NCBI GenBank assembly: GCA_026770705.1
Contig: JANJGN010000557.1
Location: 62,001-126,000 of the forward strand
Direction of reading: 5' to 3'
Length of the DNA: 64,000 nt
DNA from: Isurus oxyrinchus
Lineage: Eukaryota
The notes under the pieces are model-generated. The model saw nothing but the letters and a program-made list of their open reading frames with translations. It was not told where the DNA came from and made no database searches. Both the position numbers and the translations under genes were made by a program. The first letter of the stretch is position 1; the number at the start of each line of letters is the position of its first letter. Shown here in pieces: positions 20,521 to 63,779 of this stretch.

Positions 20521-23500
20521 TCAAACAGTCTGTCGACTTCCTTTCACTGTTTGTCTCTCCCAGACACAGACTCCAGCGATAGTGATAACCACAGCCACAA
20601 GGAATATCACAGCTCGTATTCCCAGGATCAGGATCATGTGCAGAATCTCTCCTCCACTGTCTAGAGAACACACAGAAAGAAATCATCACTGACTCTCCGC
20701 TTTCAATCTCTCACTCTGGCTGAACAATCAAGCTTCATATCACTGCAACATTTGCTGTAATATTGACCCATCCACTGGGATTCAATGTGGAATGAATGTT
20801 TTCATTGTAAACACTCTAAGAGTGGACAATCGGAACTTTCCCCTTAGCGTGGAACATTGGTGCGAATGGATCATTGTGCTGTTGGACTCCCTGTCCAATG
20901 TTTCTCTCCATCGCTGTGTACAGGATTGTGCTGTAGAAAATTCTGGAAACGTTTAGTGCAGCGTGGAAATCCATCTCGGACGCGTGTGCGAATCGGGCAG
21001 GATCAAGATGGACTCCCTCACGGACTTACTCACCCCGCTTAATAAACAGTTCCAATCTTTACCCAGAGAGAGGGGAGAATGTGGAACTCGCTCCCACAGG
21101 GAGTGGTTGAGGTGAACAGTATCGATGTATTTAAGGGGCAGGAGGGTCGGTAACCAGAGGGACACAGATTGACGAACCGGAGGGGGAGATGAGGAGAATT
21201 TGTTTTGATAGAGTGAGTTGTTGTGATCTGGAAGGTGCTGCCTGAAAGGGCGGTGGAAGCAGATTCAATAGGAACTTTCAAAAGGGAAATTGGATAAACA
21301 CTTGAAGGAGGAAGATGGGGGCAAAGTGGAGTGGTGGTTAGTGGATCTGATTGGATAGAACATTGAAAGACCTGGCACAGGCTCAATGGGCTGAATGGCC
21401 TCCTCCTGTGCTGTATCATTCTCCGCTTCCATGATCTCTCCCCCAGTTAGTAACCGCTCCAGATCCCTCTTGAAGGCAACAGAGAGACAGCAACCACCAC
21501 ACCCACTGACAGCACATTCCCGAGGATCACTACTCTCTGGGAAAAGATGAACTCCCCAACATCCAGCCTATTCCTGCTTCCTGGAGAGTGTAAACCCTTC
21601 CCAGAGCGCGGATGTACCTTTCAATAAACTGTATCATCAAATCTACCATTTGATATATAAGTTAATTTTGATGACCTTACAGCATGTGTAGCAAATTGTG
21701 AAGTGAAGTTGGCTGAAAAGCTGGGAGGTGCAAGGTTAAGCACCACAGTGCCACCACTGGTGGGAGGATGTAAAGAAAGTGTGACGTTTACATAGGATGC
21801 CCCCATTATAAACAGCGTCATTGGACATGATGGCAAAACTGAACACTGGAAAGGTGAGAAAATGAAGTAAGCTCTTCACTAACAGGAAATCCCTTGCTAA
21901 ACTTTCTTATCTCTCCCTTTCTCTCAGATACACAAAATATTTGACACAGGGCATTATAAGGAGGAGTTAGGACAGGCAAGAGTTAGGGATTAGGAAGCTT
22001 CTTAAAGGAGGAGAGAGATACACAGAGAGGTGGGGAGTATCTGTTGGAATCTTTGTGCATGTGAGTTTCTGGAATAGACTTTGTAATTTGGATATTCTTC
22101 GATAAATATGAATGGGAACACAAATCCCAGAATCCAGGAGAACTCTCCAGTGCAGTACTGAGGGAGGTCAGGTAACTCACAGGGGAGTGTGTACTACTGT
22201 GTTAGTGTGTGAGTGTGTCTTTCTGTGTGCTCATGAGTGTGGGATTGTGTGTGTGCATGCACTTTGGGTCTGTACATTTGTGAGTGCTTGTGTGTGTGTG
22301 TGGGAGAGCATCTGAGTATATGTGTTTGGAGATGAGAGAAATATTAAAGTCTGTGTACACTCACATTCCACAGTAATGGTTAGGAACCCCTCCACTGCTC
22401 CATGTTCATTCTCTGCCACACACTGATATTCTCCAGTGTCCCTGGATGTAACATGAGGAATCACCAACCACAGCTCATTGTTGGAACTTGTTCTGTTCAT
22501 TGGGACATTAAGATGTCGCCACATCAGGTTAGAAGCTGGGGAGCTCTCGACAGAGCAGATTATCACTGCAGAATTCCACTCAATTATACTGATTGATGAA
22601 GCGTTAATCATATCTGGAGAAGTAAATGAGAGATTCCGTGGTGCGTCTAAAAACAAATGCAGATCAGTTAACTTAGACTGACTGTGAAGCACTTTGAAAG
22701 ACACTGAGAATGTGAAAGGTGTGATGTCAATGTAGGTTCTTTCACCACATAGCCCGTAATCCAGGCAGACACTTCAGTTCAGTATTGAGGGCGTGCTGCA
22801 CTGTCAGAGGTTCAGTACTGAGGGAGTGCTGCACTGTCAGAGAGTCAGTACTGAGGGAGTGCTGCACTGTCAGAGGGTCAGTACTGAGGGAGTGCTGCAC
22901 TGTAGGAGGGACAGTACTGTGGGAGCGCTGCACTGTAGGAGGGACAGTACTGTGGGAGCGCTGCACTGTAGGAGGGTTACTGCTGAGGTAAAACTGCACA
23001 GTCAGAGCGTCAGTTCTGATTGACCAGTGCAATGTTGGAGGAGCACTACTGAGGGATCATTACACTATTAGAGAGACAGTAATGAGGGAGTGCTGCACTG
23101 TAGAAGGGTCAGTGCTGAGGAGGCAAACACGCTGTTATGTGTGTACTATAGGCCTCCTGTGATAATGTGGAGTGCCAGGTACCTTTAAGAGAATACAAGT
23201 GGATAAACCATGTGACAGTACTGACCAATCACTGGACAGTGTGGGCCACTGGTTAACTGTAAGTCTAGAGCTGGAGGTGGCTGTGGGAGCATGCAAGGAT
23301 TTAGTGCTCTGCCCTCTGTTACTATAAATAATCAGCTTGTTCTAATGTCGGTCTCTCTTGGTTATTGATAGCGAGCATCAGGTAAGAAGAACTCAACAGG
23401 TCTGGCAGCATCGGGGGAGAAGAAAAGAGTTGATGTTTCGAGTTCTCGTGACCCTTCGACAGAACTGAGGTCATGAGGACTCGAAACGTCAACACTTTTC

Positions 23501-26500
23501 TTCTCCGCCGATGCTGCCAGACCTGCTGAGTTTTTCCAGGTAATTCTGTTTTTGTTTTGGATTTCCAGCATCCGCAGTTTTTTTGTTTTTATCAACTAAC
23601 AAGTGTATATGAAGGAGTGCAATTCGAGTTTACTCAACCAGTGAACTCATAGACTCAAGATATAAAACCAACAAACAGTCAGGGAGAGATGGACAATCCA
23701 ACATTTGATCACATTTCAGAGATGTGTAAGAATAATAAAGCAGTAATACTCAGGGATTTTAACTACCCAAATATTAACTGGGACAGCTTTAGTGAGCAAG
23801 GTAGGGAGGGAGAAAAATTCTGAAGTTGCATCCAGGAGAAGATTTTTAGCCTGTGCATAGAAAGCTCAACAAGGGAGGGGACAGTTCTGGACCTAATATA
23901 TGGAAAAGCGCCGGGGAAGTTGGAAAGCGTATCAGTAGGGGAGATGGTGACTGTAACTCAATTGGATTTAGGACAGTTATGGAGAAGGATAAGTTTGTGC
24001 TGGGAATAAAAATTCTAAACTGGGGAAAGGCTAATTTTACTAAGATGAGATATGATTGGGCCCAAGTGGACTGGGAGAAGCTCTTTGCAGATAAAACTGT
24101 GTCAGAGCAGTGGGAGGCATTCAAGGAGGGAATAGCCAGAGTACAGAGCAGATATCTTCCTGTAAAGACAAAGAGGGAGACCAAGTCTGGAGAACCCTGG
24201 AAGACAAGGAACATAAAGGTTAGGACTGAGAAAAAAGAGAAGCTTATGGCAGATACTGAGGGCTCAATACAGCAGAGTCCCTAGAGGAGTATAAATAGTG
24301 CAGATGGGAACTGAAAAAGGACATTAGGAAAGATAAGAGAGTGCATGAGAAAACACTGGTGGGTAGAATAAAGCAAAACCCAGAGGGGTTTTTTAAATAT
24401 GTAAAGAGCAGCAGAATAACTCGGGAAAGAGTGGGGTTGATTAGGGACCATCGAGGTAATGTGTGTGGACCTGGAAGACGTGGGTACAGTCCTCAATGAA
24501 TACTTTGCATCTGTCTTCACAATGGAAAAGGATGATGCAGGTATAACATCAGGGTGGAGGGCAGTGAAATATGAGATGAAATTAACACAGAGAGAGGAGG
24601 TACTAGTGGGTTTAGCGGCCTGAAAAGTGGATAAATCCACAAGCCTGGATGAGATGAATCCAAAGATGTTGAGGGAGGAAAGGGAAGAGATATCAGGGGC
24701 CCTGGCAGTAATTTTCAAATCCTCTCTGGCCACAGGTGAGGTGCCAGAGGACTGGAGGATGGCTAATGTTGTCCCATTATTAAAAAAGGGAGGAAGGGAT
24801 AGATCAGGAAATTACAGGCCAGTCAGTCTAACCTCGGTGGTGGGGAAGTTACTAGTAAGAATTCTGAAGGACAGAATGAATCTGCACAGGGAGAGACAAG
24901 GATTAATCTGGGATATTCAGCATGGATTTGTTAAGGGAAGGTCATGTTTGACAAACCTGATCAAATCTTTTGAGGAGGTAACCAGGAGTGTTGATGAGAG
25001 TAATGCCTTTGATGTGGTTGACATGGGCTTAGGAAGGTTTTTGATAAGGTGCCTCTTGGCAGAGAGGCCAAGAAAGTAAGAGCCCATGGGATCCAAGGCA
25101 AAGTGGCACGTTGGATCCAATATTGGCTGAGGCAGGAAGCAGAGGGTGATGGTGGAGGGATGTTTCTGTGACTGGATGTCTGTTTCCAGTGGGGTTCCAC
25201 AGGGCTCAGTGCTGGGGCACTTGCTGTTTGTGGTGTATGTAAATGAATTGGACTTAAATATAGGGGGAATGATCACGACGCAAATGGAATTCAACCTGGA
25301 AAAGTGTGAGGTGATGCACTTGGGGAGGGAGTTGCTGACCAGCATGGACATTGTGGACTAAATGGCCTCCTTCTGTCCTGTAAGTGTCTATGAGTCTATG
25401 AGTCCATGATGCACTGTCGGAGAGTCAGTATTAAGGATGTACTGCCTGTCAGGAGTCACTTTTTACCAGTTAAAGACCAATGGTTTGTTGGTCAACAAAG
25501 TGCAGTATGTGGGAGCTTGCTGTGCACATTTGATACTATTCCAGCTAATGTAGAATGAAGGATGTCCATACTTACATAGCACAGTCATTACGAGGGTCCG
25601 CTTCGATGAAACAGATGGATATCTCACTCTGCAGCTGAGAGTGTGTCCGTGGTGTTTGAGTGATGGGATCAGGGTCAGAACAGAAGTATAGGTCAGAGTG
25701 ACACCATGCTGAGTTACAGTGTTTGAGACTGATCCAGGTACGTCAGTGGGAGTGTCCCAGGTTAAGACAGGTGCTGCTGTTCCATTGCACGTTGTGTTGA
25801 AGGTGCAGCTTACATCCACACGCTCTCCTGCAATAATTTCAGCAGGGAATATCGTGGGTTTATCTGTGAAATCTAACAGACAGAGAATGGATCCTTTTAG
25901 AGAAATATAACGTGAAGCATCAGTTCAAATAGAAATCACAGTCCCACACGAGAAAGCATTTTACAAGGATGATATCAGAACTGAGAGGTTACAATGATCA
26001 TTTTAGAATTGTCTATTTTTACACTTGTTGAATCTCTGTCACTCAGATTAATACACTCTCACTCAGTGACCCTTGATTTGACCAGACTGGGTGAGGGTGG
26101 AGGAACAGCTCACAGCTTGGGGAGAACAGACTCAGCATTTGGAAAAGGATATCGAGACACTGGAGAGGGTGGTAAAAAGCTTCACAAGGATGATCTCCGC
26201 AATGTGAGGCTTTACCTATCAGGAGAGGATGAACAGGCTGGGTCTCTGTTCTCTTGAACAGAGAAGGTTGAAGGGTGACCTCATTTGATCTTTGAAGTAG
26301 TGAAAGGTTTTGATCGAGTAGACATGGAGAGAGTGTTTCCACTCCTCACAATGAACAAAACCAGAGGCTGACAATATAACATCCTCACTAATAAATCCAA
26401 TGGGGAATTCAGGAGAAACTTCTTTAACCAGAGAGTGGGGAGAATGTGTGCTTCAAGAATCACTTCATTGACTGTGAATTGATTTAGGATCGTCCTGAGG

Positions 26501-28514
26501 TGGTGAAAGGCGCTATGGAAATGCGAGACTTGCTTTTGTATTTTGAAAGCAGGTTTCCAAGGATGAGATGGGAACTGAGAGGTAACAACAATCAGCAGCA
26601 ACTTTCCTATTTTCAAACTTGGTGGGGAATGTGTCACTGAGCTGAATACACTTTCACTCCCAGACCCTTGAATTGCCAACACTGGGGTGTGGGTGATTGA
26701 GCAGCCCACAGCTCATGGAACCCTGGCTCATCATTCTCTCAGAGATCTGGGTCACTGATCCCATTGCCCTCTGTGGGAGCTTCCTGTGCACAAACTCACT
26801 GCCACGTTAGACAGTGACTATACTTCAAGAATTTCTTCATTGTCTGTGAAATGATTTGAAGTTTGCTGAGGTGGTGTAAGGCGCTATAGGAATGCACATC
26901 CTTCTTTTGTCAAATTGTTAGACATTTCAAAAGCATTAGGGAGACTAATGGGAGTGGATAACCTGATAACATTGATGGACACAGTCAATATATTTAATCA
27001 TTGATATTAAAGTGAGTAATAGAGGTTGCTTTAGGACTGAATTGGAAGTTATCACCCGGTTATTGAGAATCAGACAGTCTGTTATAATAAACTGTATTTT
27101 GTGTTAATATGCAAACGTCACAGTTTGTGTTATTTCCCATTGAGTGTTGTATGTGAATTGTTGAGTAATTATAACACAGCACTTACCAGAAACGTGAAGC
27201 CGGGTTACAGGGTAATAGTTATGGCTCGGACCATTGTCAAATTCTATTCTGAAAAAATAAGGTCCCGCATCTTCCCATCTGATGCTGTTTATAATCAGGG
27301 AACAGTCGCCATCTTTCAGGTCTCCAGACAGCCGGGTCCGATGGCGGAACCGTGGTAACTCGTGACTGTGATCCTTGGAGTGAAAGGCAATGGGAGCCCG
27401 CAATTTGTATTTCTTAATATTTAACCAGATTCCGACTTGTCGTTTGTTTTCAAAATATGCTGGATAACTGTAATGACATGGAATCTGTACACACGAACCT
27501 TCCTGCGCTGTCACCTCTCGTGGAGTGTCACCTTTCCACTCTTGTAACAGTCCAACTGGGGAGAGAAATATCAATATTTAACCCTGGATCCTCATTGTTT
27601 AAGGAATCTCTGGATCTTCATTGTTTAATGAATCTCTTTGGATCCTCATTGTCTAAGGGATTATTTCTGATCCAAACCCCATATTGTTGTATTGTTGATT
27701 CCGATGCAGCATTGTAGACTGACTTGTCCCCAAGCTCAGCACTGACCCTACTCCAGCAGACACTGTGAAACACACTAACAAAGCGCCTCTAGCCTGAGCT
27801 CTGCATGTGTCGAGAGAAAGACAAATATACAAACTGAATATTGACCCCTTTACACACAGACAGCTTTACCTTCCTTCTCTCTTTCAGTTATCTTGCTCCC
27901 TTATTGAAGTTTCTAGCAAGGTGAGAATGGACAGGAAGTGTGACACTGAACAGCCTGTCTATTCTAGGAGCTGCTGTGTTGTCTTCATGGGAAATTCTGA
28001 CTAAAATCAGCAAAAGACACTAATTTCAGGCCATTGCTGTCAGAGTCCTAGCCACAAGATAGACTTCATCCCCTGAATTTTGTGTCCAATTTTATACTCA
28101 AACTTTCACCTCCGCACACACCCACCCCGACCCCACAAGTCACTCGCTGACCTACACTGGCTCCCAGTCCAACAACACCTCGATGTGATTATTTTCACAC
28201 TTGATTTCCAATCCCTCCATCCCTCCGCTCCACTCCCTGTCTCTGTAACCTCCTCCAAACCTACAACCCTCTGTGATCTCTGCACTCCTCCAATTCTGCT
28301 GTCAGACAGGGAGTCAGTGTATATCAGTGAGCACAGGGGTGATGGGTGAATGGGACTTGGTGTGAGTTTGTACACTGGCTCACTGCTGAATCAGTTGCCA
28401 ATCACAGCTCAATAAGAATGATCTTTTACGAAGACTATTAACCATCAATTTGCCCGAGCTGACGATGATATTACCTTGGAGAAGTGACAGGAGGCAGTAA
28501 TATTTCCCGATCAT
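20521..28514 (-). CDS. Siglec-like receptor copy A: leader-V-C2-C2-TM(Arg)-short tail, 375 aa, activating type
   Basis: Exons 28514-28475 (MIGKYYCLLSLLQ), 27555-27187 (V-set, SCVQIPC..DCSL..YFFRIE), 25872-25576 (C2), 22646-22365 (C2), 20660-20521 (YSGGEILHMILILGIRAVIFLVAVVITIAGVCVWERQTVKGSRQTV*). All introns are GT-AG, phase 1, and the frame is intact. Confidence 0.9.
23120..25390 (+). mobile_element. Degenerate CR1 LINE ORF2 (EN/RT) in intron of copy A, with nested TG..CA element and SINE
   Basis: VPEDWRMANVVPLLKKGGRDRSGNYRPVSLTSVVGK; QHGFVKGRSCLTNL; SGVPQGSVLG. Nested insert ~23158-23673. Confidence 0.9.
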
Positions 28515-29091
28515 TGTCCACTCCCAGATATTTCAACAGCTTCTCACTCTCAAACTCTGAAAGAGAAAGGAGTTAATGAGACCTCACCTCTTGTCCGACA
28601 GCTCTCGAGAGATCAGAACTGTTTTTGGACAATGTCTTCACAGACTAATTTGATTCTCTGTGGGATGATAGGTGTTCTGCAGAGAGTTACAAGGCTTTAA
28701 GAAAGAAAAACAATGAAGGACTTGCATTTCTATATCGCCTTTCACCTGCTCAGGACACCCCAAAGCTCATGTCCCTGCTCTTCCCTCATCCCTTGAGCTA
28801 GAAAGATGTTCTGTACAACAGACTTGAGCCTCACACCCAGATCTCAATAATCAGTAGAAATCTTTCAAAGGCATCAATCATTGGAATCTGTCTTTATAAA
28901 GTCACAACATCAACAAAGGACGGTGTTGGTCGTGGAAGTGAATTCCAATCGTTCCGTTACTTACCCAGGACCTGTCCGAATGCTCGCCTGGGGAGCAACT
29001 GCCCACACGCTCTGCTTGGGCTGAATGACCTCTTCCTGTGCTGCCCCCTCTGTGTATTTAGTGAGAAAGGGTTGATGTGTCTCTGTGAGAC

Positions 29092-29104
29092 AAAATGGGG
29101 AAGT
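29092..29104. promoter_or_regulatory. PU.1/ETS-type site upstream of putative non-coding first exon (conserved in all copies)
   Basis: AAAATG(A/G)GGAAGT at 29092, 39823, 47228 and 62590, about 130 bp upstream of a conserved G|GTAAGT donor (28965 in A). Confidence 0.5.
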
Positions 29105-31326: not shown

Positions 31327-34300
31327 TCAAACAGTCTGTCGACTTCCTTTCACTGTTTGTCTCTCCCAGACACAGACTCCAGCGATAGTGATAACCACAG
31401 CCACAAGGAATATCACAGCTCGTATTCCCAGGATCAGGATCACGTGCAGAATCTCTCCTCCACTGTCTAGAGAACACACAGAAAGAAATCATCACTGACT
31501 CTCCGCTTTCAATCTCTCACTCTGGCTGAACAATCAAGCTTCATATCACTGCAACATTTGCTGTAATATTGACCCATCCACTGGGATTCAATGTGGAATG
31601 AATGTTTTCATTGTAAACACTCTTAAGAGTGGACAATCGGAACTTTCCCCTTAGCGTGGAACATTGGTGAGAATGGATCATTGTGCTGTTGGACTCCCTG
31701 TCCAATGTTTCTCTCCATCGCTGTGTACAGGATTGTGCTGTAGAAAATTCTGGAAACGTTTAGTGCAGGGTGGAAATCCATCTCGGACGCGTGTGCGAAT
31801 CGGGCAGGATCGAGATGGACTCCCCCATGGACTTACACACCCCACTTAATAAACAGTTCCAATCTTTACCCAGAGAGAGGGGAGAATGTGGAACTCGCTC
31901 CCACAGGGAGTGGTTGAGGTGAACAGGATCGATGTATTTAAGGGGCAGGAGGGTCAGTAACCAGAGGGACACAGATTGACGAACCGGAGGGGGAGATGAG
32001 GAGAATTTGTTTTGACAGAGCGAGTTGTTGTGATCTGGAAGGTGCTGCCTGAAAGGGCAGTGGAAGCAGATTCAACAGGAACTTTCAAAAGGGAAATTGG
32101 ATAAACACTTGAAGGAAGAAGATGGGGGCAAAGTGGAGTGGTGGTTAGTGGATCTGATTGGATAGAACATTGAAAAACCTGGCACAGGCACAATGGGCTG
32201 AATGGCCTCCTCCTGTGCTGTACCATTCTCCGCTTCCATGATCTCTCCCCCAGTTAGTAACCACTCCAGATCCCTCTTGAAGGCAACAGAGAGACAGCAA
32301 CCACCACACCCACTGACAGCACATTCCCGAGTATCCCTACTCTCTGGGAAAAGATGAACTCCCCAACATCCAGCCTATTCCTGCTTCCTGGAGAGTGTAA
32401 ACCCTTCCCAGAGCGCGGATGAACCTTTCAATAAACTGTATTATCAAATCTACCGTTTGATATATGTTAATTTCGATGAACTTACACCATATGTAGCAAA
32501 TTGTGAAGTGAAGTTGGCTGAAAAGCTGGGAGGTGCAAGCTTAAGCACCACAGTGCCACCACTGATGGGAGGATGTAAAGACAGTGTGACGTTTATATAT
32601 GTTGCCCCCATTATAAACAGGGTCATTGGACATGATGGCAAAACTGAACACTGGAAAGGTGAGAAAAAGAAGTAAGCTCTTCACTAACAGGAAATCCCTT
32701 CCTAAACTTCCGTATCTCTCCCTTTCTCTCAGATACACAAAAAATTTGACACAGGGCATTATAAGGAGGAGTTAGGACAGGCAAGAGTTACGGATTAGGA
32801 AGCTTCTTAAAGGAGGAGAGAGATACACGGAGAGGTGGGGAGTATCAGTTGGAATCTTTGTGCATGTGAGTTTCTGGAATAGACTTTGTAATTTGGATAT
32901 TCTTCGATAAATATGAATGGGAACACATATCCCAGAATCCAGGAGAACTCTCCAGTGCAGTACTGAGGGAGGTCAGGTAACTCACAGGGAAGTGTGTACT
33001 ACTGTGTTTGTGTGTGTGTGTCTTTCTGTGTGCTCATGAGTGTGGGATTGTGTGTGTGCATGCACTTTGGGTCTGTACATTTGTGAGTGCTTGTGTGTGT
33101 GTGCGTGGGAGAGCATCTGAGTATATGTGTTTGGAGATGAGAGAAATTTTAAAGTCTGTGTACGCTCACATTCCACAGTAATGGTTAGGAACCCCTCCAC
33201 TGCTCCATGTTCATTCTCTGCCACACACTGATAGTCTCCAGTATCCCTGGATGTAACGTGAGGAATCACCAACCATAGCTCATTGTTGGAACTTGTTCTG
33301 TTCATTGGGACATTAAGATGTCGCCACATCAGGTTAGAAGCTGGGGAGCTCTCGACAGAGCAGATTATCACTGCAGAATTCCCCTCAATTATATTGATCG
33401 ATGAAGCGTTAATCATATCTGGAGAAGTAATTGAGAGATTCCGTGGTGCGTCTAAAAACAAATACAGATCAGTTAACTTACACTGACTGTGAAGCACTTT
33501 GAAAGACACTGAGAATGTGAAAGGTGTGATGTCAATGTAGGTTCTTTCACCACAAAGCCCATAATCCTGGCAGACACTTCAGTTCAGTATTGAGGGCGTG
33601 CTGCACTGTCAGAGGGTCAGTACTGAGGGAGTGCTGCACTGCCAGAGGTTCAGTGCTGAGGGAGTGCTGCACTGTCAGAGGGTCAGTCCTGAGGGAGTGC
33701 TGCACTGTAGGAGGGACAGTACTGTGGGAGTGCTGCACTGTAGGAGGGTTACTGCTGAGGTAAAACTGCACAGTCAGAGCGTCAGTTCTGATTGACCAGT
33801 GCAATGTTGGAGGAGCACTACTGAGGGATCATTATACTATTAGAGAGACAGTAATGAGGGAGTGCTGCACTGTAGAAGGGTCAGTGCTGAGGAGGCAAAC
33901 ACGCTGTTATGTGTGTACTATAGGCCTCCTGTGATAATGTGGAGTGCCAGGTACCTTTAAGAGAATACAAGTGGATAAACCATGTGACAGTACTGACCAA
34001 TCACTGGACAGTGTGGGCCACTGGTTAACTGTAAGTCTAGAGCTGGAGGTGGCTGTGGGAGCAGGCAAGGATTTAGTGCTCTGCCCTCTGTTACAATAAA
34101 TAATCAGCTTGTTCTAATGTCGGTCTCTCTTGGTTATTGATAGCGAGCATCAGCTAAGAATAACTCAACAGGTCTGGCAGCATCGGGGGAGAAGAAAAGA
34201 GTTGATGTTTCGAGTCCTCATGACCCTTTGACAGAACTGAGGTCATGAGGACTCGAAACGTCAACACTTTTCTTCTCCGCCGATGCTGCCAGACCTGCTG

Positions 34301-45000: not shown

Positions 45001-46650
45001 GTATCAGTGGAGAGGAAGACAGGGTTAACGTTTCGAGTCCGTATGACTCTTCATCAGACCAGAGGTTTGAGTTCACTGGCTTCTCATTTCCTCAGTGATC
45101 TGGGTGATTTATCACCTTGTGGTTTGTTGGATCTTGCTGTGCACAATCTGCCTGCTGTGTTTTACATCTGTGACTACAATTCAGGAATAATTTCATTGGC
45201 TGTGAAGGGATTTGGATCCTCCTGAGGTGGTAAATTGCGCTGCAGAAATGCACATCTTTCTTTTATCGATACGTCAGACTTTTAAACAGGACAGGAGAGA
45301 TTGATGGGAATGGATAACCTGATAATACAGTTAATGCTTTTCATCATTGATATTAAAGTGAGTATTAGAGGTTGCTTTAGGACTGAACTGGAAGCTATCA
45401 CCAGGTTATTGAGAATCAGACAGTGTGTCTGATGTGTAAGCTGTGTTTTGTGTTAATATGTAAACGTCACAGTTTGTGTTATTTCCCATCAAGTGTTGAA
45501 TGTGAATTGTTGAGTAATTATAACACAGCACTTACCAGAAATGTGAAGCTGGGTTACAGGGTAATAGTTATGGCTCGGACCATTGTCAAATTCTATTCTG
45601 AAAAAATAAGGTCCCGCATCTTCCCGTCTGAAGTTATTTATAATCAGGGAACAGTCGCCATCTTTCAGGTCTCCTGACAGCCGGGTCCGATGGTGGAATC
45701 TTTGATCCCTGTGACTGTGACCTTCGGAGTGAAAGGCTATAGACCATTTAGGCTGTGGATTCACATCTATTCCTTTCAACCAGATTCTGACACGCGATCT
45801 CCCTACTAAATTTGATGAGTAACTGTAATGACATGGAATCTGTACACACGAGCCTTCCTGTGCTGCAACCTCTCGTGGAGTGTCGCCTTTCCACTCTTGT
45901 GACAGTCCAACTGGGGAGAGAAATATCAATATTTAACTCTGGATAGTTTGTAGATCCACTAGACTCGATATCCACTCCCTCCATCACTGGGGCACAGTGG
46001 CTGCAGTGTGGACCATCTACAGGACACACAAGGAACTCCCCAAGGTTTCACAATGGATGGAAGAGATTCCTGGACACAGGAGTGGACAAGTTCATTCTAC
46101 ATTTGCTCATGGTCCTCAGGACCCTGTTTAGTGAAGCCAGTCTTCCACCCAACACAGTGTCTACAAGATACACAGGGAAACTGTGTAAACATCTCATCTC
46201 TCTACACTGACTGGCTTGGCTTCGGTTTAACTTTCAGTTATTTTACTTCCTTATTGTGGTTGCTATGGTGAAACTGTGCAGGAAGTGTGAGGGCTGGACT
46301 CTCTGTCTATTCTCACTGCAGCTGTGATGTGGTCGTGGTGATTGTCAGTAAAATGAATCCCTCTGATCTCCTCCATCCCCGAGGTTTAGCGAGTGAATTC
46401 CAGAGCTCAGGCCCCAGGCAGCTGAAGGCCCGGCCGCCAGTATTGGAGTGATGGGAATCGGGGGATGGTCAAGAGGCCGGAATTGGACTAACACAGAGAT
46501 CTGGGAAGTTGTTTGGGTGAGTTGCAGGAGGTTACAGAGATAAAGAGATAAGAATGATCTTTTACAAAGACTGTTAAACATAAATCTATCCGAGCTGATG
46601 ATGATATTACCTTGGAGAAGTGACAAGAGAAAGTAAGATTTCCCGATCAT
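42091..46650 (-). CDS. Siglec-like receptor copy C: leader-V-C2-TM(Arg); second C2 exon half-deleted
   Basis: Exons 46650-46611 (MIGKSYFLLSLLQ), 45910-45536 (V), 44673-44377 (C2), 42230-42091 (TM Arg). The C2b remnant 43902-~44054 lacks its 5' half and acceptor; skipping it keeps the frame. Confidence 0.78.
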
Positions 46651-51851: not shown

Positions 51852-53829
51852 GTGTTGGGTGTGAGTTTGGTTGGGTTTGGGAGTGACTGTATAAAACATT
51901 GCAGATACAGGACTGGAGCAGCCATATCAATAACCAGGCTACTGGAGCAGCTGAGAGGCTGGGGATCCTATGGTGTGTGACTCACCTGATTCCTCAAAGC
52001 CCAACCACGCTCACAGTTTTCATAAACAGGACCTCGATATTCATCAACACGGTGGTTCGATTTGATTCCTGCTTTCCCCTCGCCTCTCTTCTGTAATAGA
52101 GATGGAAATGGACAGAGTGACAATCAACATGATGTGTATTCGGTGTTGGGTTTGATTATTGGGGAGAGAGTTCCAGATTTCCACTCCCCTTTGTGTGAAG
52201 AAGTGCTTCCTGACATCACCCCTGAATGGCCTGGCTCCAATCTGAAGTTCCAGCCCCCTTGTTCTGGACTCCACCCGACCCCCACCACCCACCCCCACCC
52301 GAGGGAATAGCTTCTCTCTATCGACCCTATCGAGTGTTTAATCAGTTTGAACCCCTCAGTTAGATCCCTCCTTAATCTCCTAGACCTGAGGGAATATAAT
52401 CGTAGACTGTGTGTAACCTGTCTGCATAATTTAACCAGAAAGATGTTCTGTACAACAGACTTGAGCCTCACACCCAGATCTCAATAATCAGTAGAAATCT
52501 TTCAAAGGCATCAATCATTGGAATCTGTCTTTATAAAGTCACAACATCAACAAAGGACGGTGTTGGTGGTGGAAGGGAATTCCAATCGTTCCGTTACTTA
52601 CCCAGTACCTGTCCGACTGCTCGCCTGGGGAGGAACTGCCCACACGCTCTGCTTGGGCTGAATGACCTCTTCCTGTGCTGCTCCCTCTGTGTATTTAATG
52701 AGAAACGGTTGATGTGTCTCTGTGAGTCAAATCAGGAATTGGGGAACAATTGTGAAAACCCTTTCATTGAAACGTAGGGCCTTAGTTTTGTGTTGTAAGC
52801 AAACTGTTAACTCTTTGTGTCCTGACCCTGTGACGTGATTCTTGTGTAAAGTTGAACAGTCGTTGAGCGAGTTTCAAATCACTGCTCACTCCAGGTGTTG
52901 AGGTGGATTTTCTGAAGGAGCAGATGTTGCTCAGCGCTCCTTAAAAATGTGAGATCCTGAACAATGTGTAAGAGGACGAGAGAAAGAATGAGAAGGAGAG
53001 CATTAGTGGAGATAAGAGAGAGAGTGAATGAGAGAGAGAATGACAAGGAGAGCATTAATGGAGTTAAGAGAGAGAGTGAATGAGAGAGAGAGAGAATGAG
53101 AAGGCCAGCATTAGTAGAGATAAGAGAGAGAGTGAATGCAACAGGGAAAATGGAAAGAGATTGCATTCACTAACAAAAGAAAGGTTTTCATTTATATAGC
53201 ACTTTTCACATCCTCAGTAGGTCACAAGGTATTTTATGGTCCAGGTCAACACTGCCAGTTACAGGACTGCGTTGTGAAACAGTGAATGTTGGATGAGATG
53301 TGAAACAGTGAGTGAACATCAAAGCTCTTCAGGGGCTGTGAAGGGTTTTGTGTTGTCAAAGGTGCTATAGAAATGCAAGTTCTTTCTATAAGGAGAGAAG
53401 GTTGAAGAAAACATGTTCAAAAACAACCAATTAAAGCTTCACACTTACTTTCTCACACACTTGAAGATGAAGAATCCACTCAGTCCAACACTCAAACAGA
53501 TTCCAGCTCCAAGCAATCCTGCTTTCCATTATTGGAATCTCGCCCTGTAAAATCAGCCAATGAATGACTCCGGTACAGTTTGAGAATGGTTCCCTATGTA
53601 CATGTAGTAATTCTGAACTTGTGAAGTGATATTGTCTATGCATGAAAGATCTATACAAATAACATTTATCTATGTAATATTTATTGATAATATCCATGTA
53701 CATGCAGGTTTCTATAAGGAGGATTCACATATAACAGAGGTGCCAAGCTGCTGAGGTGACACACAGGACTACATACACACCAAACAGTGGAAACAACATG
53801 CTATAGACAGAGCAAAGCGATCCCACAAC

Positions 53830-54760: not shown

Positions 54761-56596
54761 ATGAGCTAATAACAAGAGAACGTTCAATTCTGTGTAACTC
54801 ATGTTCCACAGTGATGGTTATGACCCCCTCCACTGCTCCATGTTCATTCTCTGCCACACACTGATAGTCTCCAGTGTCCCTGGATGTAACATGAGGAATC
54901 ACCAACCACAGCTCATTGTTGGAACTTGTTCTGTTCATTGGGATATTAAGATGTCGCCACGTCAGCTTAGAAGCTGGGAAGCTCTCGACAGAGCAGATTA
55001 TTACTGCAGAATTCTCCTCAATGATATTGATCGATGAAGCGTTAATCATATAAAGAGAAGTAATTGAGAGATTCTGTGGGGCATCTAAAAACATAAAGAT
55101 TTTAATGTGAGCAAGCACAGTGCACAGCAAGACTCCATGCATCATCTCTCTGTATCTGATGTCTGAATGCAATTCCAGGCACCTTCCTCAGCATACGTTC
55201 CTCTGTCACATTTACAATGGATACTGCCTATGTAAACTGTCACACTGCAGTTACATTCTCCCACCCATTGAGGTGCTGTCCATCTAGAATGAAAGAACCT
55301 TCCATTCACATCCTCAGTATTTCACCAAGGGCTGGGCAGGCAATGAATTGTATTTGACCAATGGAGCACTGAGGGGTAAATCTACATTTCTCTGTTCAGG
55401 AGGTTGCTCCATCCAATTCAGGGTCTTGTTGATCTGGAGTTTCCCTTCCTTCAACACAGAATTAGAGCTGACACCGGGACTCCAGTGCAGTGAATGTTTG
55501 TGTGTGCATGTGGTAGATCATTTGTGTATATGTGTTCAAATCTGAGAGAGATGTTGAAGTCTGTGTAACTCACATTCCACAGTGATGGTTATGAACCCCT
55601 CCACTGCTCCATGTTCATTCTCTGCCACACACTGATAGTCTCCAGTGTCCCTGGATGTAACGTGAGGAATCACCAACCACAGCTCATTGTTGGAACTTGT
55701 TCTGTTCATTGGGACATTAAGATGTCGCCACGTCAGGTTAGAAGCTGGGAAGCTCTCGACAGAGCAGATTATCACTGCAGAATTCCCCTCAATTATATTG
55801 ATTGATGAAGCGTTAATCATATCAAGAGAAGTAATTGAGAGATTCTGTGGTGTGTCTGAAAACAAATGAAGATCAGTTACTTACACTGACTGTGAAGCAC
55901 TTTGAGAGACACTGAGAATGTGAAAGGCGTGATATCAATGTAGGTTCCTTCACCACAAAGCACGTAACCCAGGCAGACACTTCAGTTCAGTAAGGAGTGA
56001 GTGCTGACCTGTCAGAGGGTCAGTACTGAGGGAGTGCTGCACTGTCAAATGTTCAGTTCTGAAGGAGTGCTGCACTGTTGGAGGGTCAGTATAGAGGGAG
56101 TGCTGCACTGTCGGAGGGTCAGTCCTGAGGCAGTGCTGCACTGTCGGAGGGTCAGTACTGAGGGAGTGCTGCACTGTCAGAGGGTCTGTACAGAGGGAGT
56201 GCTACACTGTCAGAGGGTCAGTACTGAGGGAGTGCTGCACTGTCAGAGGGTCAGTACTGAGGGAGTGCTGCACTGTCAGAGGGTCAGTACTGAGGGAGTG
56301 CTGCACTGTCAGGGGGTGAGTACATTGTGATTCCTGCTCTGCTCTATCGGTCTCTTGGCTGTAAATAAAAGCCGCTGTGTTACTGTTCAGAAACTGTTAT
56401 TAATGTTGTGCTGGTCACTATTTTCCTGAAAAAACAGATGATCTGTTTCTCATCACAATACCTCTCTATGGGATCCTTCTATGCATAATCTAGAATATTC
56501 CAGCTAATCTGGAATGAAGGATGTCTGTACTTACATAGCACAGTTAGTACGAGGGTCCGCTCCAATGAAACAGATGGATATCTCACTCAGCAGCTG

Positions 56597-56862
56597 NNNN
56601 NNNNNNNNNNNNNNNNNNNNNNNNNNNNNNNNNNNNNNNNNNNNNNNNNNNNNNNNNNNNNNNNNNNNNNNNNNNNNNNNNNNNNNNNNNNNNNNNNNNN
56701 NNNNNNNNNNNNNNNNNNNNNNNNNNNNNNNNNNNNNNNNNNNNNNNNNNNNNNNNNNNNNNNNNNNNNNNNNNNNNNNNNNNNNNNNNNNNNNNNNNNN
56801 NNNNNNNNNNNNNNNNNNNNNNNNNNNNNNNNNNNNNNNNNNNNNNNNNNNNNNNNNNNNNN
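56597..56862. other. Assembly gap (266 N)
   Basis: Run of N inside copy D. Confidence 1.
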
Positions 56863-59822
56863 ACTGTCGGGGGGTCAGTAGGAAGTTGCTCTGCAATGTC
56901 AGAGGTGAATTTTTATCAATAAAAGCAGATGATCTGTTGTTAAACAAACTGTATTTTATGGGTTTTTGCTGTGAAACATGTGGACTATAATGGCCAATGT
57001 AGAATGAAGGTCGTCCGTACTTACCTTGCACAGTGAGTACGAGGGTCCGCTCCGATGAAACAGATGGATATCTCACTCTGCAGCTGAGAGTGTGTCCGTG
57101 GTGTTTGAGTGATGGGATCAGGGTCAGAACAGAAGTATAGGTCAGAGTGACACCATGCTGAGTTACAGTGTTTGAGACTGATCCAGGTACGTCAGTGGGA
57201 GTGTCCCAGGTTAAGACAGGTGCTGCTGTTCCATTGCACGTTGTGTTGAAGGTGCAGCTTACATCCACACGCTTTCCTGCAATAATTTCAGCAGGGAATA
57301 TCGTGGGTTTATCTGTGAAATCTAACAGACAGGGAATGGATCCTTTTAGAGAAATATAACGTGAAGAATCAGTTCAAATAGAAACCACAGTCCCACAAGA
57401 GAAAGCACTTTTACAAGGATGATATCAGAACTGAGAGGTTACAATGATCAGGAAAGATTTTCTTGCTCTTTGGCAGTAGTGTTTCTGTCTCTCAGCTTAA
57501 TACACGTTCACTCCGAGACATGTGAATTGAGAACACTGGATGAGAGAAGAGGCTCAGACCAGAGATTGGAGTTAAAAGCAGAATACTGTGGATGCTGGAA
57601 ATCTGAAACAAAAACAAAAATTGCTGGAAAGACTCAGCAGGTCTGACAGTATCAGTGGAGAGGAAGACAGGGTTAACGTTTCGAGTCCGTATGACTCTTC
57701 ATCAGACCAGAGGTTTGAGTTCACTGGCTTCTCATTTCCTCAGTGATCTGGGTGATTTATTACATTGTGGTTTGCTGGATCTTGCTGTGCACAAACTGCC
57801 TGCTGTGTTTAACATCTGTGACCACAATTCAGGAATAATTTCATTGGCTGTGAAGGGATTTGGATCCACCTGAGGTGGTAAATTGCGCAGCAGAAATGCA
57901 CATCTTTCTTTTATCGATACGTCAGACTTTTAAACAGGACAGGAGAGATTGATGGGAATGGATAACCTGATAATACAGTTAATGCTTTTCATCATCGATA
58001 GTAAAGTGAGTATTAGAGGTTGCTTTAGGACTGAACTGGAAGCTATCAGCAGGTTATTGAGAATCAGACAGTGTGTTATAATAAACTGGGTTTTGTGTTA
58101 ATATATAAACGTCACAGTTTGTGTTATTTCCCATTGAGAGTTGAAAGTGAATTGTTGAGTAATTATAACACAGCACTTACCAGAAACGTGAAGCTGGGTT
58201 ACAGGATAGTAGCTGTATTTATTTCTGCTGTCAAATTCTATTCTGAAAAAATAAGGTCCTGCATCTTCCCGTCTGATGTTGTTTATAATCAGGGAACAGT
58301 CGCCATCTTTCAGGTCTCCAGACAGCCGGGTCCGATGGTGGAACCGTGGTAACTCGTGACTGTGATCCTTGGAGTGAAAGGCTATAGACGATGTTCTCCA
58401 TTCCTCATTATTAAACCAGACTCCAACTCGTGGTTGCTTTTCCAAATGTGATGGATAACTGTAATGACATGGAATCTGTACACACGAACCTTCCTGCGCT
58501 GTCACCTCTCGTGGAGTGTCACCTTTCCACTCTTGTGACAGTCCAACTGTGGAGAGAAATATCAATACTTAATTCTGGATGTTTTTTCGATCCACTAGAC
58601 TTGATATCCAACCCCTCCATCACTGGGGCACATTGGCTGCAGTGTGGACCATCTACAGGACACACAAGGAACTCCCCAAGGTTTCACAATGGATGGAAGA
58701 GAATCCTGGATACGGGAGTGGACAAGTTCATTCTACATTGGCTCATGGTCCTCAGGACCCTGTTTAGCTTTTTTTCAAATTATTCATTCATGGAATTTAT
58801 TGCCCATCCCATGTCCATCAGAGGTATTTAAGAGTCAACCACATTGCTGTGGGTTTGGAGTGACATGTAGGCCAGACTGGGTAAGGGTGGCAGATTTCCT
58901 TCCCTATAGGTGATCAGTGAACCAGGCTTTTTAATCCCATTCATCTGCTGTGATAGGATTCACACCCAGGGCCCCAGAGCATCACCCTGGGCCTCTGGAA
59001 TACTCGCCCAGTGACAATACCTCTCTGCTACCGCTTCCCCTTAGTGAAGCCAGTCTTCCACTCAGAACTCCCCCCATTATCACCGTCATGAATCACTAAT
59101 TAGCCTAACATTCCTGTCTGCTCTTCAACACAGCTGATTGGTTAATCTGATTCAATCTGATTGGTGTTCATTCCCTCTTCAATGTTTAAGGAATCACCAA
59201 TCACTCGGCCTCTAGTTATTCTCCTGCCCACAAGAGGGAACATTCTCTGTCTACCCAGTCAATCAAAACCTTTCATCTAAACCTAGTGGTGCTTGAGTAT
59301 ATAGTCGGGAATCCAGGGCAATGGAGCCTCAGGAGAAGAGATGGAAACCCTGTGAGGTGGAACGTCACTGAGGCCATCCGAGTTGAAGCGACTTTTGGAG
59401 AGAATTCCAAGGCAAGATCTTCGAAGTTGAAGATTGGAATCCCTCATGAGAGAAACAGAGTTTCAGTGAGATTGGTTGACTGACAGTGTTCACTGATGTC
59501 CGGGTGGGTTGTTGTGAAATCCATGGGCTCTATCTTGGTTGCGTTTACAATTTAATGAGTAATGTGGCTGTGAGACCACAGTTTGCCTGTTAATTCACAT
59601 GAGCTCATATTAATCCAGAATGTTAGGGTATAAGGTGGATATTGTGAATTATTTTATCTTTCTGAGCTGGTAAAGTTTATTTTTGTTTGTTTAAAAGCCA
59701 TGGAATCTTGTAGCTTTATTCTCTTCGCAAGCATCTTAAATCTCAAACCTCGTCTACTTGAAACAAAATATTATTGGTTCCTAACTGTAAATTATCAAAA
59801 AAAATTGGGTGTCTCTTCCTCC

Positions 59823-61100: not shown

Positions 61101-63739
61101 TAAGGGTCTTAAATTGTCTGATTGTTGAATGATACAGCACAGGAGGAGCTCATTTGACCCATCGTGCATGTGCTGGCTCTTTCCCAATTCCTCTCCAGCA
61201 CCTTTCACACAGCCCTGCAAATTTCCCTTCAAGTATTTATCCAGTTCCCCTTCTGAAAGTTCCTGTTGAATCTGCTTCCACCGCCCTTTCAGGCAGTGAG
61301 TCAATGGTCTCTCTCTGAGCTGCAAAGTGCTCAGATTCTGTGAAATTTAAACTCTGCAGCAGATCAGAAACAATCATGATAACTCAGAATATTTGACAGT
61401 TTTACACACAGACAGCTTTGCCTCCCTTCTCTCTTTCAGTTATCTTGCTCCCTTATTGAAGTATCTAGCAAGGTGAGAATGGACAGGAAGTGTGACACTG
61501 AACAGCCTGTCTATTCTAGGAGCTGCTGTGTTGTCTTCATGGGAAATTCTTTTTAAAATCAGCAACAGACACAAATTTCAGATTATTGCTATCAGGATCC
61601 TAGAACCTGGATAGATTTCATCCCCCAGTTTTTATCCCTGATTTTCAGCTCAACCCATCCCTCCCCATCTCTCACTGACCAACACCCGACATCACCTGAA
61701 GTTTAAGATTCTGCTCTCGCTGCTACAATTCTGCTAACCCTGTAACCTCCTCCAGCCCCTACAACCCTCTGAGATCTCTGCTCTCCTCCAATTCTGCTGT
61801 CAGACAGGGAGTCAGTGTATATCAGTGAGCACAGGGGTGATGGGTGAATGGGACTTGGTATGAGTTTGTACACTGGCTCACTGCTGAATCAGTTCCCAGT
61901 CACAGCTCAATAAGAATGATCTTTTACGAAGACTATTGACCATAAATCTGTCCAAGCTGACGATGATATTACCTTGGAAAAGTGACAGGAAGAAGTAAGA
62001 TTTCCCGATCATTGTCCACTCCCAGATATTTCCTCAGCTTCTAACTCTGAAGTTCTGAAAGAGAAAGGAGTTAATGAGACTTCAACTCTTGTCCGACAGC
62101 TCTTGAGAGATCAGAACTGCTTTTAGACAATGTCTTCACAGACTAATTTGATTCTCGGTGGGATGATAGATGCTCTGCAGAGAGTTACAAGGTTTTAAGG
62201 AAGAAAAACAATGAAGGATTTGCATTTCTATACAACCTTTCACCTCCTCAGGGCATCCCAAAGCTCATGTCACTCCACTTCCCTCGCCCCTTGAGCTAGA
62301 AGGATGTTCTGTATGACAGACATGACCCTCACACCCAGATCTCAATAATCATTAGAAATCTTTCAAAGGCATCAATCATTGGAGTCTGTCTTCATAAAGT
62401 CACAACATCAACAAAGGACGGTGTTGGTGGTGGAAGTGAATTCCAATCGTTCCGTTACTTACCCAGGACCTGTCCGACTGCTCGCCTGGGGAGGAACTGC
62501 CCACACGCTCTGCTAAGGCTGAATGACCTCTTCCTGTGCTGATCCATCTGTGTATTTAATTAGAAAGAGCTGATGTGTCACTGTGAGACAAAATGAGGAA
62601 GTTGGAACAAAGTGAGTGAACCGCACTTTGCTGTGCACTGTCAGTAAACCCTGTGTCTGTATAAGAATATAAGAACAGAACAAGTAGGATCAGCTGGACA
62701 CCCTGACATTTTCATTCCTTATATGCCAACCACTCATTTTTTTATCCACTCACTGAAACTATTTATCTCCCTCTGCAGCCTCTTTGTGTCCTCCTCACAA
62801 CTTGCTTTCCTGCCCAGCTTATATATTTCCTACCTATCTTCACCATACAGTCAGAAAATCTGTCTACAGTACAGTCAGTCCCTTCATCCAAGTCACTAAT
62901 GTAGATTGTGAATAGTTGAGGCTTTGAAATATCTGTCTAATTATTCCCACGCTCAGCTCTGCTCTCTCCTCCAAAGCCCTGCAAAATGTCCCCTTCAAGT
63001 ATTTATCCAGTTCCCCTTCTGAAAGTTCCTGTTGAATCTGCTTCCACCGCCCTTTCAGGCAGTGAGTCAATGGTCTCTCTCTGAGCTGCAAAGTGCTCAG
63101 ATTCTGTGAAATTTAAACTCTGCAGCAGATCAGAGACAATCATGATAACTCAGAATATTTGACAGTTCTACACACAGACAGCTTTACCTTCCTTCTCTCT
63201 ATCAGTTATCTTGCTCCCTTATCAAAGTTTCTAGCATGGTGAGAATGGAGAGGAAGTGTGACACTGAACAGCCTGTCTATTCTAGGAGCTGCTGTGTTGT
63301 CTTCATGGGAAATTCTGTCTAATATCAGCAAAAGACACAAATTTCAGGATATTGCCATCAGAATCCTAGCACCTGGATATATTTCATCCCCCAGTTTTTA
63401 TCCCTGACTTTCTGCTCAACCCATTACTCCCCGTCTCTCACTGACCAACACCCGACATCACCTGAAGTTTAAGATTCTGCTCTAGCTGTTACAATCCTGC
63501 CTAATTGGGTAACTGTCTCCAGCCCCTACAACCCTCTCAGATCTCAGCTCTCTTCCAATTCTGCTGTCAGACAGGGAGTCAGTGTATTTCAGTGAGCACA
63601 GGGGTGATGGGTGAATGGGACTTGGTGTGAGTTTGTACACTAGCTCACTGCTGAATCGGTTCCCTATCAGAGCTCAATAAGAATGCTATTTTACAAAGAC
63701 TATTAACCATAAATCTGTCCAAGCTGACGATGATATTAC

Positions 63740-63779
63740 CTTGAAGAAGTGACAGGAGGAAGTAAGATTTCCCGATCAT
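63740..63779 (-). CDS. Additional Siglec leader exon (MIGKSYFLLSLLQ-G|gtaata) in ~1.77-kb tandem duplicate of leader module
   Basis: 62960-64000 duplicates ~61200-62250. No V exon lies between the two leaders. Confidence 0.75.

Follow-up and report, generated by a model that had tools for sequence, protein, structure and literature searches.

Paired activating and inhibitory Siglecs are regarded as a mammalian, pathogen-driven innovation, and reviews credit fish with Siglec-1, CD22, MAG and Siglec-15 only. The question raised by the locus described here is whether a shark carries a comparable system. The locus lies in a stretch of 64,000 nucleotides of Isurus oxyrinchus (assembly GCA_026770705.1, contig JANJGN010000557.1, positions 62,001 to 126,000 of the forward strand), which is referred to below as the window and numbered from its first letter. 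An original prediction, made from the letters alone, held that four tandem genes (A, B, C and D) form an independently evolved paired Siglec array, in which A, B and C would be activating and D inhibitory. Following the present analysis, it seems likely that the window holds a rapidly evolving tandem cluster of Siglec-family genes beside hepcidin, with two alternative 3' modules of opposite predicted output.

Siglec-type genes in tandem

All coding features of the array lie on the minus strand, and comparison of the window with itself resolves tandem duplication units of ~10.8 kb each. The unit at 18807-29900 matches that at 29615-40646 for 95-96%, the third (40392-47240) matches for ~90% and contains an internal deletion, the fourth (54.7-62.6k) is more rearranged than the others, and the leader region is duplicated once more at 62972-64000. 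Five leader exons (MIGK[YS]Y..LLSLLQ, phase-1 donor) start at 28514, 39260, 46650, 62012 and 63779, and are accompanied by V exons (four), C2-1 exons (four) and complete C2-2 exons (three), all of phase 1-1 and with AG/GT splice sites. The sole run of N in the window is at 56597-56862.

The searches, for D as well as for the other genes, were run exon by exon. Pfam assigns V-set and Ig_CD22 (the CD22-like first Ig) to all V exons tested, and C2-set_2 and Ig_3 to the C2 exons. Against the PDB (phmmer), the V exon of D matches Siglec-5 best (5.5e-16), followed by CD33, MAG, Siglec-8 and sialoadhesin (these five all within 5.5e-16 to 6e-14), Siglec-10 and Siglec-7, with weaker matches to Siglec-15 (2e-8) and CD22 (1.6e-5). 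In the alignment YFFRIE falls on YFFRVE of Siglec-5, and SCVQIPC on LCVLVPC. The C2-1 exon matches nectin-4, MAG and domain 2 of CD33. An AlphaFold2 (AF2) model of the D V exon reached a predicted local distance difference test (pLDDT) score of 92.3, and every Foldseek match to it among those shown to rank 47 was a Siglec V-set (sialoadhesin, CD33, MAG, Siglec-7, -10, -8, -5 and -15, with TM-scores of 0.8-0.88). Pfam, phmmer and the AF2/Foldseek comparison thus all return a Siglec-type V-set.

The motifs listed in the original prediction (SCVQ(I/M)(P/R)C, DCSL and Y[FY]FRIE) are all present on the minus strand in the V exons. The essential arginine of the F strand is found in all four of them as part of Y[FY]FRIE; in the family alignment this residue, R101, occurs in at least 90% of the proteins and is, together with C26 and C83, nearly invariant. 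As a sequence pattern alone, the cysteines are also those expected for Siglecs, in which a B-E disulfide lies within the sheet and an additional V cysteine pairs with one in C2-1, with SC..(I/M)(P/R)C and DCSL in V and CTFNTTC..SC in C2-1. Judged by sequence and modelled fold, the genes of the array belong to the Siglec (I-type lectin) family.

Genes A, B and C with an arginine in the membrane

Genes A and B are intact and comprise five coding exons, i.e. leader, Siglec V-set, C2-1, C2-2 and a terminal exon encoding a transmembrane (TM) segment with an arginine, designated TM(Arg). The exons of the three genes that carry this terminal exon are:

28965..29049, minus, gene A, probable non-coding first exon (97% identity to D tail exon 2)
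28475..28514, minus, gene A, coding part of the leader, MIGKYYCLLSLLQ, phase-1 donor
27187..27555, minus, gene A, Siglec V-set exon (Pfam, motifs)
25576..25872, minus, gene A, C2-1 exon with three cysteines (CTFNTTC..SC)
22365..22646, minus, gene A, C2-2 exon
20521..20660, minus, gene A, terminal exon, TM with arginine, ERQTVKGSRQTV, stop (homologous junction in P0006 and P0019)
39221..39260, minus, gene B, leader
37958..38326, minus, gene B, V-set exon, SCVQMRC variant
36350..36646, minus, gene B, C2-1 exon
33170..33451, minus, gene B, C2-2 exon
31327..31466, minus, gene B, terminal TM(Arg) exon
46611..46650, minus, gene C, leader
45536..45910, minus, gene C, V-set exon with D-like flanking introns and a unique C-C' loop
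44377..44673, minus, gene C, C2-1 exon
43902..44052, minus, gene C, C2-2 remnant, 3' half only, with an upstream stop and no acceptor (probably skipped)
42091..42230, minus, gene C, terminal TM(Arg) exon, frame continuous from the C2-1 donor (G+AC = Asp)

The terminal exons (20660-20521, 31466-31327 and 42230-42091) read SGGEILH[MV]ILILGIRAVIFLVAVVITIAGVCVW, followed by ERQTVKGSRQTV and a stop. The membrane segment (..ILILGIRAVIF..) contains the arginine, and the tail that follows it consists of 12 residues (ERQTVKGSRQTV) without tyrosine, so that all three exons pair a basic residue in the TM with a short tail free of signalling motifs, as in paired receptors of the activating type. The claim that A, B and C share this ending therefore stands as far as the exons are concerned, but C keeps only half of its C2-2. 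The predicted threefold excess of activating members (3:1) is found within the window and holds for the window only.

The exon junctions of A, B and C rest on cross-species models, as reads were examined only over the D end. In other sharks, six RefSeq models (P0006, P0019, P0202, P0205, P0207 and P0253) join C2 exons to the TM(Arg) exon; models ending in TM(Arg), joined to C2-2 or C2-1, come from Scyliorhinus torazame, S. canicula, Chiloscyllium punctatum and Carcharodon carcharias. In A and B, the codon at the junction between C2-2 and TM(Arg) is T+AC (Tyr), which is the same as the ..VQYSRGEILHVILILGIRAG.. junction of the Chiloscyllium RefSeq model. The shorter V-C2-1-TM(Arg) form that is open to C is also modelled by RefSeq, in Carcharodon (P0207) and Scyliorhinus (P0202 and P0253; ..LTVQDSGGEILHVILILGIRAV..), and from its sequence gene C can still encode a V-C2-TM(Arg) receptor. 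With the TM(Arg) region of P0006 as query, a word-based search returned only 2 proteins, a whole-protein search with P0014 found more TM(Arg) models, and a look-up of the TM(Arg) exon in the ESM Atlas gave no usable match.

The D end and its tyrosine-bearing tail

The features assigned to gene D, including the assembly gap that divides them, are:

61973..62012, minus, leader
58181..58546, minus, V-set exon (Pfam, PDB matches, AF2 model)
57025..57321, minus, C2-1 exon, to the right of the gap
56597..56862, no strand, assembly gap (N), interrupting a second C2-1-like exon
56535..56596, minus, 3' end of the second C2-1-like exon, TGA in frame, GT donor intact
55574..55855, minus, D-side C2-2 exon (covered by RNA contigs with 0-1 mismatches)
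54803..55084, minus, D-side extra C2 exon, donor AT instead of GT, likely a pseudo-exon
53449..53544, minus, neutral TM exon (..NEWKAGLLGAGICLSVGLSGFFIFKCVR), assembly short of one base between 53531 and 53530
52602..52686, minus, tail exon 2 (GSSTGRGHSAQAERVGSSSPGEQSDRYW), RNA joint 53449>52686 in X17 and X18
51986..52090, minus, tail exon 3, the YENC exon (..DEYRGPVYENCERGWALRNQ), probably a cassette, joined to the last exon in an X17 RNA contig, present in P0203 and absent from P0014
50108..50224, minus, last coding exon (..DDLYANCDFAKDSVYGNL, stop), from homologues and an RNA contig

The TM exon, tail exon 2, the YENC exon and the last exon were mapped by means of shark homologues. The TM segment (53544-53449) is neutral (GLLGAGICLSVGLSGFFIFKCVRK), and the tail contains three tyrosine motifs on the minus strand, i.e. 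PVYEN (52030-52016), LYANC (50158-50144) and SVYGNL directly followed by the stop (50128-50111). RefSeq models P0014, P0171 and P0203 join the same neutral TM and YxN tail to C2 exons; P0203, from Stegostoma, has the same four-exon tail (..PTYENCEIDWALRNQ followed by ..NIYANCNFDEEAMYGNV), while P0014 and P0171 are without the YENC exon. D-type homologues have the order V-C2-1-TM.

Reads were compared over 50050-55950, using two probable RNA runs (X17 and X18) and two DNA runs (X2 and X5). The canonical joint 53449>52686 occurs in both RNA runs and not in the DNA runs, and one RNA contig of X17 joins 51986 to 50224, again canonically and again without a counterpart in the DNA runs. The latter joint spans a 24-bp minisatellite (50280-51899, ~66 copies) which separates the YENC exon from the last exon and contains a long open frame on both strands. 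The possibility that this minisatellite is part of a tail exon was rejected, because the RNA contig passes directly from 51986 to 50224, and the minisatellite is therefore intronic.

Divergence between the copies

The copies differ strongly in how far their exons have diverged. C2-1 is 95-99% identical among the copies at the protein level (96-99% in comparison with D), and the TM(Arg) exon is 98-100% identical among A, B and C. For the V domain, A and B are 89% identical and every other pair 72-79%. Of the near-identical exons that had been expected, those of C2-1 and the leaders, which are alike, were recovered as such, but the V-sets are only 72-89% identical. The introns around the V exon are 93-100% identical between C and D, with identity dipping to 62% in 58461-58353 (the C-C' loop) and to 75% in 58233-58173 (the G strand). 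Each copy has its own C-C' loop, while the remaining scaffold is homogenised, and gene C as a whole combines a D-like 5' end with an A/B-like 3' end.

How the array might work

In the reading that we consider likely, each gene would provide a signal peptide, a V-set of the sialic-acid-lectin type and one or two C2 domains, followed by one of two 3' modules. With the first module (A, B and a two-Ig form of C), a single exon would supply the membrane arginine and the 12-residue signal-less tail, and the products would need an adaptor with an ITAM (immunoreceptor tyrosine-based activation motif; of the DAP12, FcRgamma or CD3zeta type) to deliver activating signals, as the analogy to Siglec-14, -15 and -16 and further receptors with arginine or lysine in the membrane suggests. 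With the second module (the D end), a neutral TM and three tail exons with YENC, YANC and the C-terminal SVYGNL would recruit SHP phosphatases and/or Grb2, like a tail of the CD22 type. The leader and C2-1 may be held nearly identical by unequal crossing-over and patchy gene conversion, and the array would then amount to related, non-identical lectin heads wired to opposite outputs. The scheme builds on the exon structure, the Siglec fold and motifs, the splicing of the D tail and the recurrence of the same junctions in cross-species models, all of them observed; we infer the ligand, the adaptor pairing and the sign of the signal.

Both signalling types in one shark array, together with a hypervariable C-C' loop and a concertedly evolving stalk, would change the mammal-only picture of paired Siglecs, as the same arms-race architecture would have arisen, or have pre-existed, in one of the oldest lineages of jawed vertebrates. 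An array of this kind would also give a concrete reason to seek adaptors of the DAP12/FcRgamma type in sharks. Its value is tempered by the fact that the genes have already been annotated by pipelines and that their function is read from motifs.

Points against a paired system and rival explanations

A number of observations weigh against a paired activating/inhibitory system, in part because of the heads and tails themselves and in part because of the state of the D end. The V domains of A, B and C are 76%, 79% and 72% identical to that of D, respectively, and thus lack the highly similar ligand-binding domains of a Siglec-5/14-type pair; with 21-28% of the residues different, a shared ligand specificity is not implied. 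Among the three tyrosine motifs of D, only SVYGNL fits the consensus of the immunoreceptor tyrosine-based inhibitory motif (ITIM), [ILVS]xYxx[ILV]. YENC, YANC and YGNL are all YxN, PVYEN and LYANC being of the Grb2 type, and instead of the ITIM (LxYAxL) plus TEYSEI of CD33-related (CD33r) Siglecs the tail holds only YENC, YANC and SVYGNL. An end of the form Y-x-N-[VILM]-COOH is common to proteins of turtle and teleosts that have been automatically named CD22-like or MAG-like. Moreover, a survey from 2014 found no FcRgamma homologue in shark data (PMC4016189). Of the predicted pairing, the Siglec family and the presence of both tail types side by side have thus held up, while near-identical V heads and an ITIM other than SVYGNL were not found; on the sequences, the pairing is looser than in Siglec-5/14.

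No in-species RNA support was obtained for the junctions between C2 and TM(Arg) in A, B and C (reads having been examined only at 50050-55950), and, apart from the two tail joints that answer the RNA check proposed earlier (53449>52686 and 51986>50224), no joint between an Ig exon and the D TM exon is among the RNA joints listed. The RNA runs are, in addition, only presumed to be RNA, and their organism code (B) differs from that of the best DNA runs (A). The assembled D TM exon does not keep the frame: it reads TCCAAT-AATGG, and TCCAATGAATGG would be expected from the homologues. That the exon is genuinely broken was nevertheless rejected, as both DNA runs, X2 and X5, carry an additional base after 53530 in plus-strand order (C there, G on the minus strand), which restores ..RDSNEWKAGLLGAG.. 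and with it ..SNEWKAGLLGAG.., as in P0014 and P0171. With this base, the D phases run 1>2 (TM exon), 2>0 (tail exon 2), 0>0 and 0>stop. The assembly departs from every covering read set (DNA, and RNA where present) at 50219, 52052, 52576 and 53530/53531, so either its base accuracy is imperfect at these positions or the reads derive from other individuals. The extra C2 exon of D (55084-54803) has an AT donor, but splicing from C2-1 (G+GG = Gly) or from C2-2 (T+GG = Trp) to the TM exon is in frame, by which the defective D exons are bypassed.

A further point concerns the assembly gap. Its right flank (56863-57024) is formed by the 162 nt of intron directly below the D C2-1 exon, while its left flank (56596-56535) reads ..SC, a stop and VRYPSVSLERTLVLTVL, followed by the donor gtaagt, i.e. 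the 3' end of a C2-1-like exon; a gap inside a plain intron was rejected on account of this flank. The gap therefore cuts an exon that carries a stop, the frame cannot be carried across it, and the linkage of the V exon (58.5k) to the tail (50-53.5k) is unproven. For the tail itself, SVYGNL fits an ITIM and the tail exons are spliced in RNA, so that the D claim is upheld for the exons and their splicing, but with a TM that is frameshifted in the assembly and a connection to V that crosses the gap. Beyond the second C2-1-like exon the same post-C2-1 intron segment, the 33-bp minisatellite described below and C2-2 follow. The arrangement around the gap is either a local duplication of C2-1 or the abutment of two gene copies. 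The latter would make D a scaffold chimera, in which the right contig supplies the 5' part of one gene (leader, V and C2-1) and the left contig starts within the C2-1 exon of another gene, the one with the inhibitory tail, and the gap would hold the absent 3' and 5' parts. Such a chimera would explain why the same exon/intron segment occurs on both flanks (56503-56596 is 88% identical to 56993-57086 and 91% to the end of the A C2-1) and why the order to the left of the gap, with the second C2-1-like exon, a short intron, the minisatellite and C2-2, mirrors the layout of A and B, all the more since assemblers often break at such repeats. The size of the gap, however, is not a round default: 266 N fits the remainder of a 297-nt exon plus ~31 nt and suits a local tandem duplication of ~490 bp, which is thereby favoured. 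Strand and order are also collinear across the gap, the order V-C2-1-TM is that of D-type homologues, and the frame runs on from the D C2-1 donor into the TM exon. A chimera is thus a possibility to be reckoned with, though a rather doubtful one, and we infer that D is a single gene.

The same defects could be taken to mean that the D end and possibly also C are pseudogenes in decay, leaving only A and B functional and no working pair in the window. The frameshifted TM of the assembly, the TGA in the second C2-1-like exon, the AT donor of the extra C2 exon and the half-deleted C2-2 of C all point that way, as does the rearranged first intron of D with its inverted repeat. Yet neither of the DNA read sets has the frameshift, spliced RNA contigs contain the tail exons and the D C2-2 exon, and all defective exons can be skipped in frame, which from C2-1 yields precisely the V-C2-1-TM form of the RefSeq shark models, so that decay seems unlikely. 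Less probable still is that the copies with a membrane arginine are not activating, but have a partner without ITAM or serve as decoys or endocytic lectins, with the YxN tail signalling positively through Grb2. It is true that no shark adaptor was identified in the literature searched, and that the tail motifs are mostly YxN, a type also seen in CD22-like and MAG-like proteins from teleosts and turtles. Against this, the TM(Arg) exon is conserved in three shark orders, and a basic TM with a short signal-less tail generally marks adaptor-dependent activating receptors; to our knowledge it does so in every characterised vertebrate family (KIR, LILR, Siglec-14/15/16, TREM and NITR).

Relatives and ancestry

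At E<=0.001, the V exon of D finds 1524 relatives in a set of 1.84 billion representatives, and the highest-ranking are shark and ray RefSeq models named Siglec-8/10/12/13/14 or CD33-like. A search with P0014 returned 116 proteins (E<=1e-20) from more than 25 species of sharks, rays and skates, with both tail types represented, and the closest exons are those of Carcharodon and Cetorhinus (95-98% in the C2 exons). By sequence, the closest annotated relatives of the cluster are found in lamniform sharks.

In a tree of V domains, the elasmobranch proteins form a clade of their own (95/99), separate from the amniote CD33r-like clade (100/100). Within the elasmobranch clade, proteins with TM-Arg, with a YxN tail and with a CD33r-like tail are interspersed; the last type (LLYANINF...TEYAQIRF) is seen in P0004, P0005, P0011 and P0012. 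A MAG-like (P0122) and a CD22-like shark protein (P0048) fall outside the elasmobranch Siglec clade. A node of weak support (86/76) unites the elasmobranch clade, the amniote CD33r clade and a shark MAG-like protein, in a tree without curated human references, and orthology to the CD33rSiglecs is therefore not settled. The proposed phylogenetic check thus gave a distinct elasmobranch clade and a weak link to CD33r. A separate clade with interspersed tail types fits a lineage-specific origin of the pairs, as had been predicted, and would fit a shuffling of modules within the elasmobranch lineage.

Compared with Siglec-5/14 and Siglec-11/16, the shark array has in common that neighbouring genes with a Siglec V-set and C2 domains differ in having either a basic TM and a short tail or a tail with tyrosine motifs, and that there are signs of gene conversion or recombination between copies (the mosaic gene C). 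It differs in the identity of the V domains between activating copies and D (72-79%, versus over 90-99% in the mammalian pairs), in a D tail of YxN motifs and one ITIM instead of ITIM and ITIM-like TEYSEI, in TM exons that are unrelated in sequence, and in lying beside HAMP instead of in the CD33r cluster, with V domains of an elasmobranch-only clade. With the CD33-related Siglecs it shares the V motifs EG.CV..PC and ..CSL.I....D.G.YFFR.E, the extra cysteine of C2-1 (CxxxxxC), the domain order and the best sequence matches (Siglec-5 and CD33), and the LLYANINF...TEYAQIRF tails of other members of the shark clade resemble LHYASL...TEYSEI; MAG and sialoadhesin score almost equally, however, and orthology is not established. 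Likeness to CD22 and MAG is found in the C-terminal Y-x-N-[VILM], shared with CD22-like and MAG-like proteins of turtle and teleosts, and in the locus, but the V domain of solved CD22 is a weak match (1.6e-5, versus 5.5e-16 for Siglec-5) and the shark genes encode 2-3 Ig domains, not 5-7.

Literature searches on Siglecs in sharks, elasmobranchs and Chondrichthyes found no paper describing the array, in line with the original prediction, but RefSeq already names the family Siglec or CD33-like, one TM(Arg) model being called 'Siglec-14 isoform X2'. The automatically named shark and ray models belong to the same family as the array and include both tail types, so the family is auto-annotated in many sharks and rays under names that are automatic only, with no functional or comparative description found. 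A study of teleosts, and of teleosts only, states that fish have only Siglec-1, CD22, MAG and Siglec-15 and no CD33-related Siglecs (PMC7226832).

As to the genomic setting, the last exon of a hepcidin-like gene is found at ~12.9k (12860-13010, plus strand), with the furin site QKR followed by MGRQQLCRFCCNCCNWREPNETCGLCCRY with 8 cysteines and a stop, which places the Siglec array beside HAMP. The mammalian HAMP lies near MAG, which is the likeness in locus referred to above, and CD22 is adjacent to this HAMP/MAG neighbourhood. On human chromosome 19 (HSA19), HAMP is grouped with the USF2, MAG and FFAR genes (PMC4453067). A bolder reading, which we offer only tentatively and think more doubtful than not, is that the window samples a large, fast-evolving cluster of cartilaginous-fish Siglecs at the ancestral HAMP-MAG/CD22 locus with three interchangeable 3' modules (TM-Arg, the YxN/ITIM tail and the CD33r-like tail with ITIM and TEYxxI), so that the CD33-related type and the logic of pairing would predate the split between cartilaginous and bony vertebrates. 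If so, sharks must have an ITAM adaptor for the receptors with a membrane arginine that has been missed by surveys, and all Siglec subfamilies would trace back to one locus.

Repeats, first exons and neighbouring features

A segment of ~300 bp that holds D tail exon 2 (52437-52738) is repeated with 92-97% identity and with its splice sites kept at 28800-29094, 39545-39833, 46936-47238 and 62298-62610, in each case ~450-550 bp upstream of a leader ATG (those of A, B, C and 62012). A copy upstream of the fifth leader would fall past the end of the window; this leader, a duplicate of the D leader region, is without a V exon of its own downstream:

63740..63779, minus, fifth leader

The copies are probably non-coding first exons, because in the Cetorhinus model P0180 a copy of this kind is joined to an acceptor 41 nt upstream of the leader ATG. 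Their sequences indicate a common origin of D tail exon 2 and the 5' exon of the genes.

A 33-bp minisatellite, one frame of which reads TVQHSLSTDPP, is found repeatedly both inside introns and between the units, at 9.8-10.05k, 12.0-12.5k, 18.6-19.1k, 22.74-23.03k, 29.3-29.9k, 33.55-33.8k, 40.0-40.7k and 55.95-56.33k, and is probably a substrate for unequal crossing-over. Fragments of reverse transcriptase of the long interspersed nuclear element (LINE) type are found in the introns between C2-1 and C2-2 of A (23.8-25.4k) and B (34.6-36.1k), as well as downstream of each TM(Arg) exon (19.84-20.1k, 30.55-30.98k and 41.3-41.9k). The intron that separates the extra C2 exon of D from its TM exon contains a very high-copy interspersed repeat (53793-54777), at which the depth exceeds that of the neighbouring sequence by a factor of thousands in each of the four runs. 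The 3.4-kb first intron of D contains an inverted repeat (59823-60058 and 60867-61101) and a piece (60715-60947) homologous to the sequence just upstream of the V exons of A and B, with no V exon after it, a rearrangement that looks like the trace of a deletion or of a fusion between two former genes. On the opposite strand, a lone Siglec-like V-set exon (3101-3436, plus; ..SCVVIPCSFDFP..NCLVRIDSLRAEDSDVYYTQF) is without the arginine of the F strand, and no further Ig exon follows it within the window.

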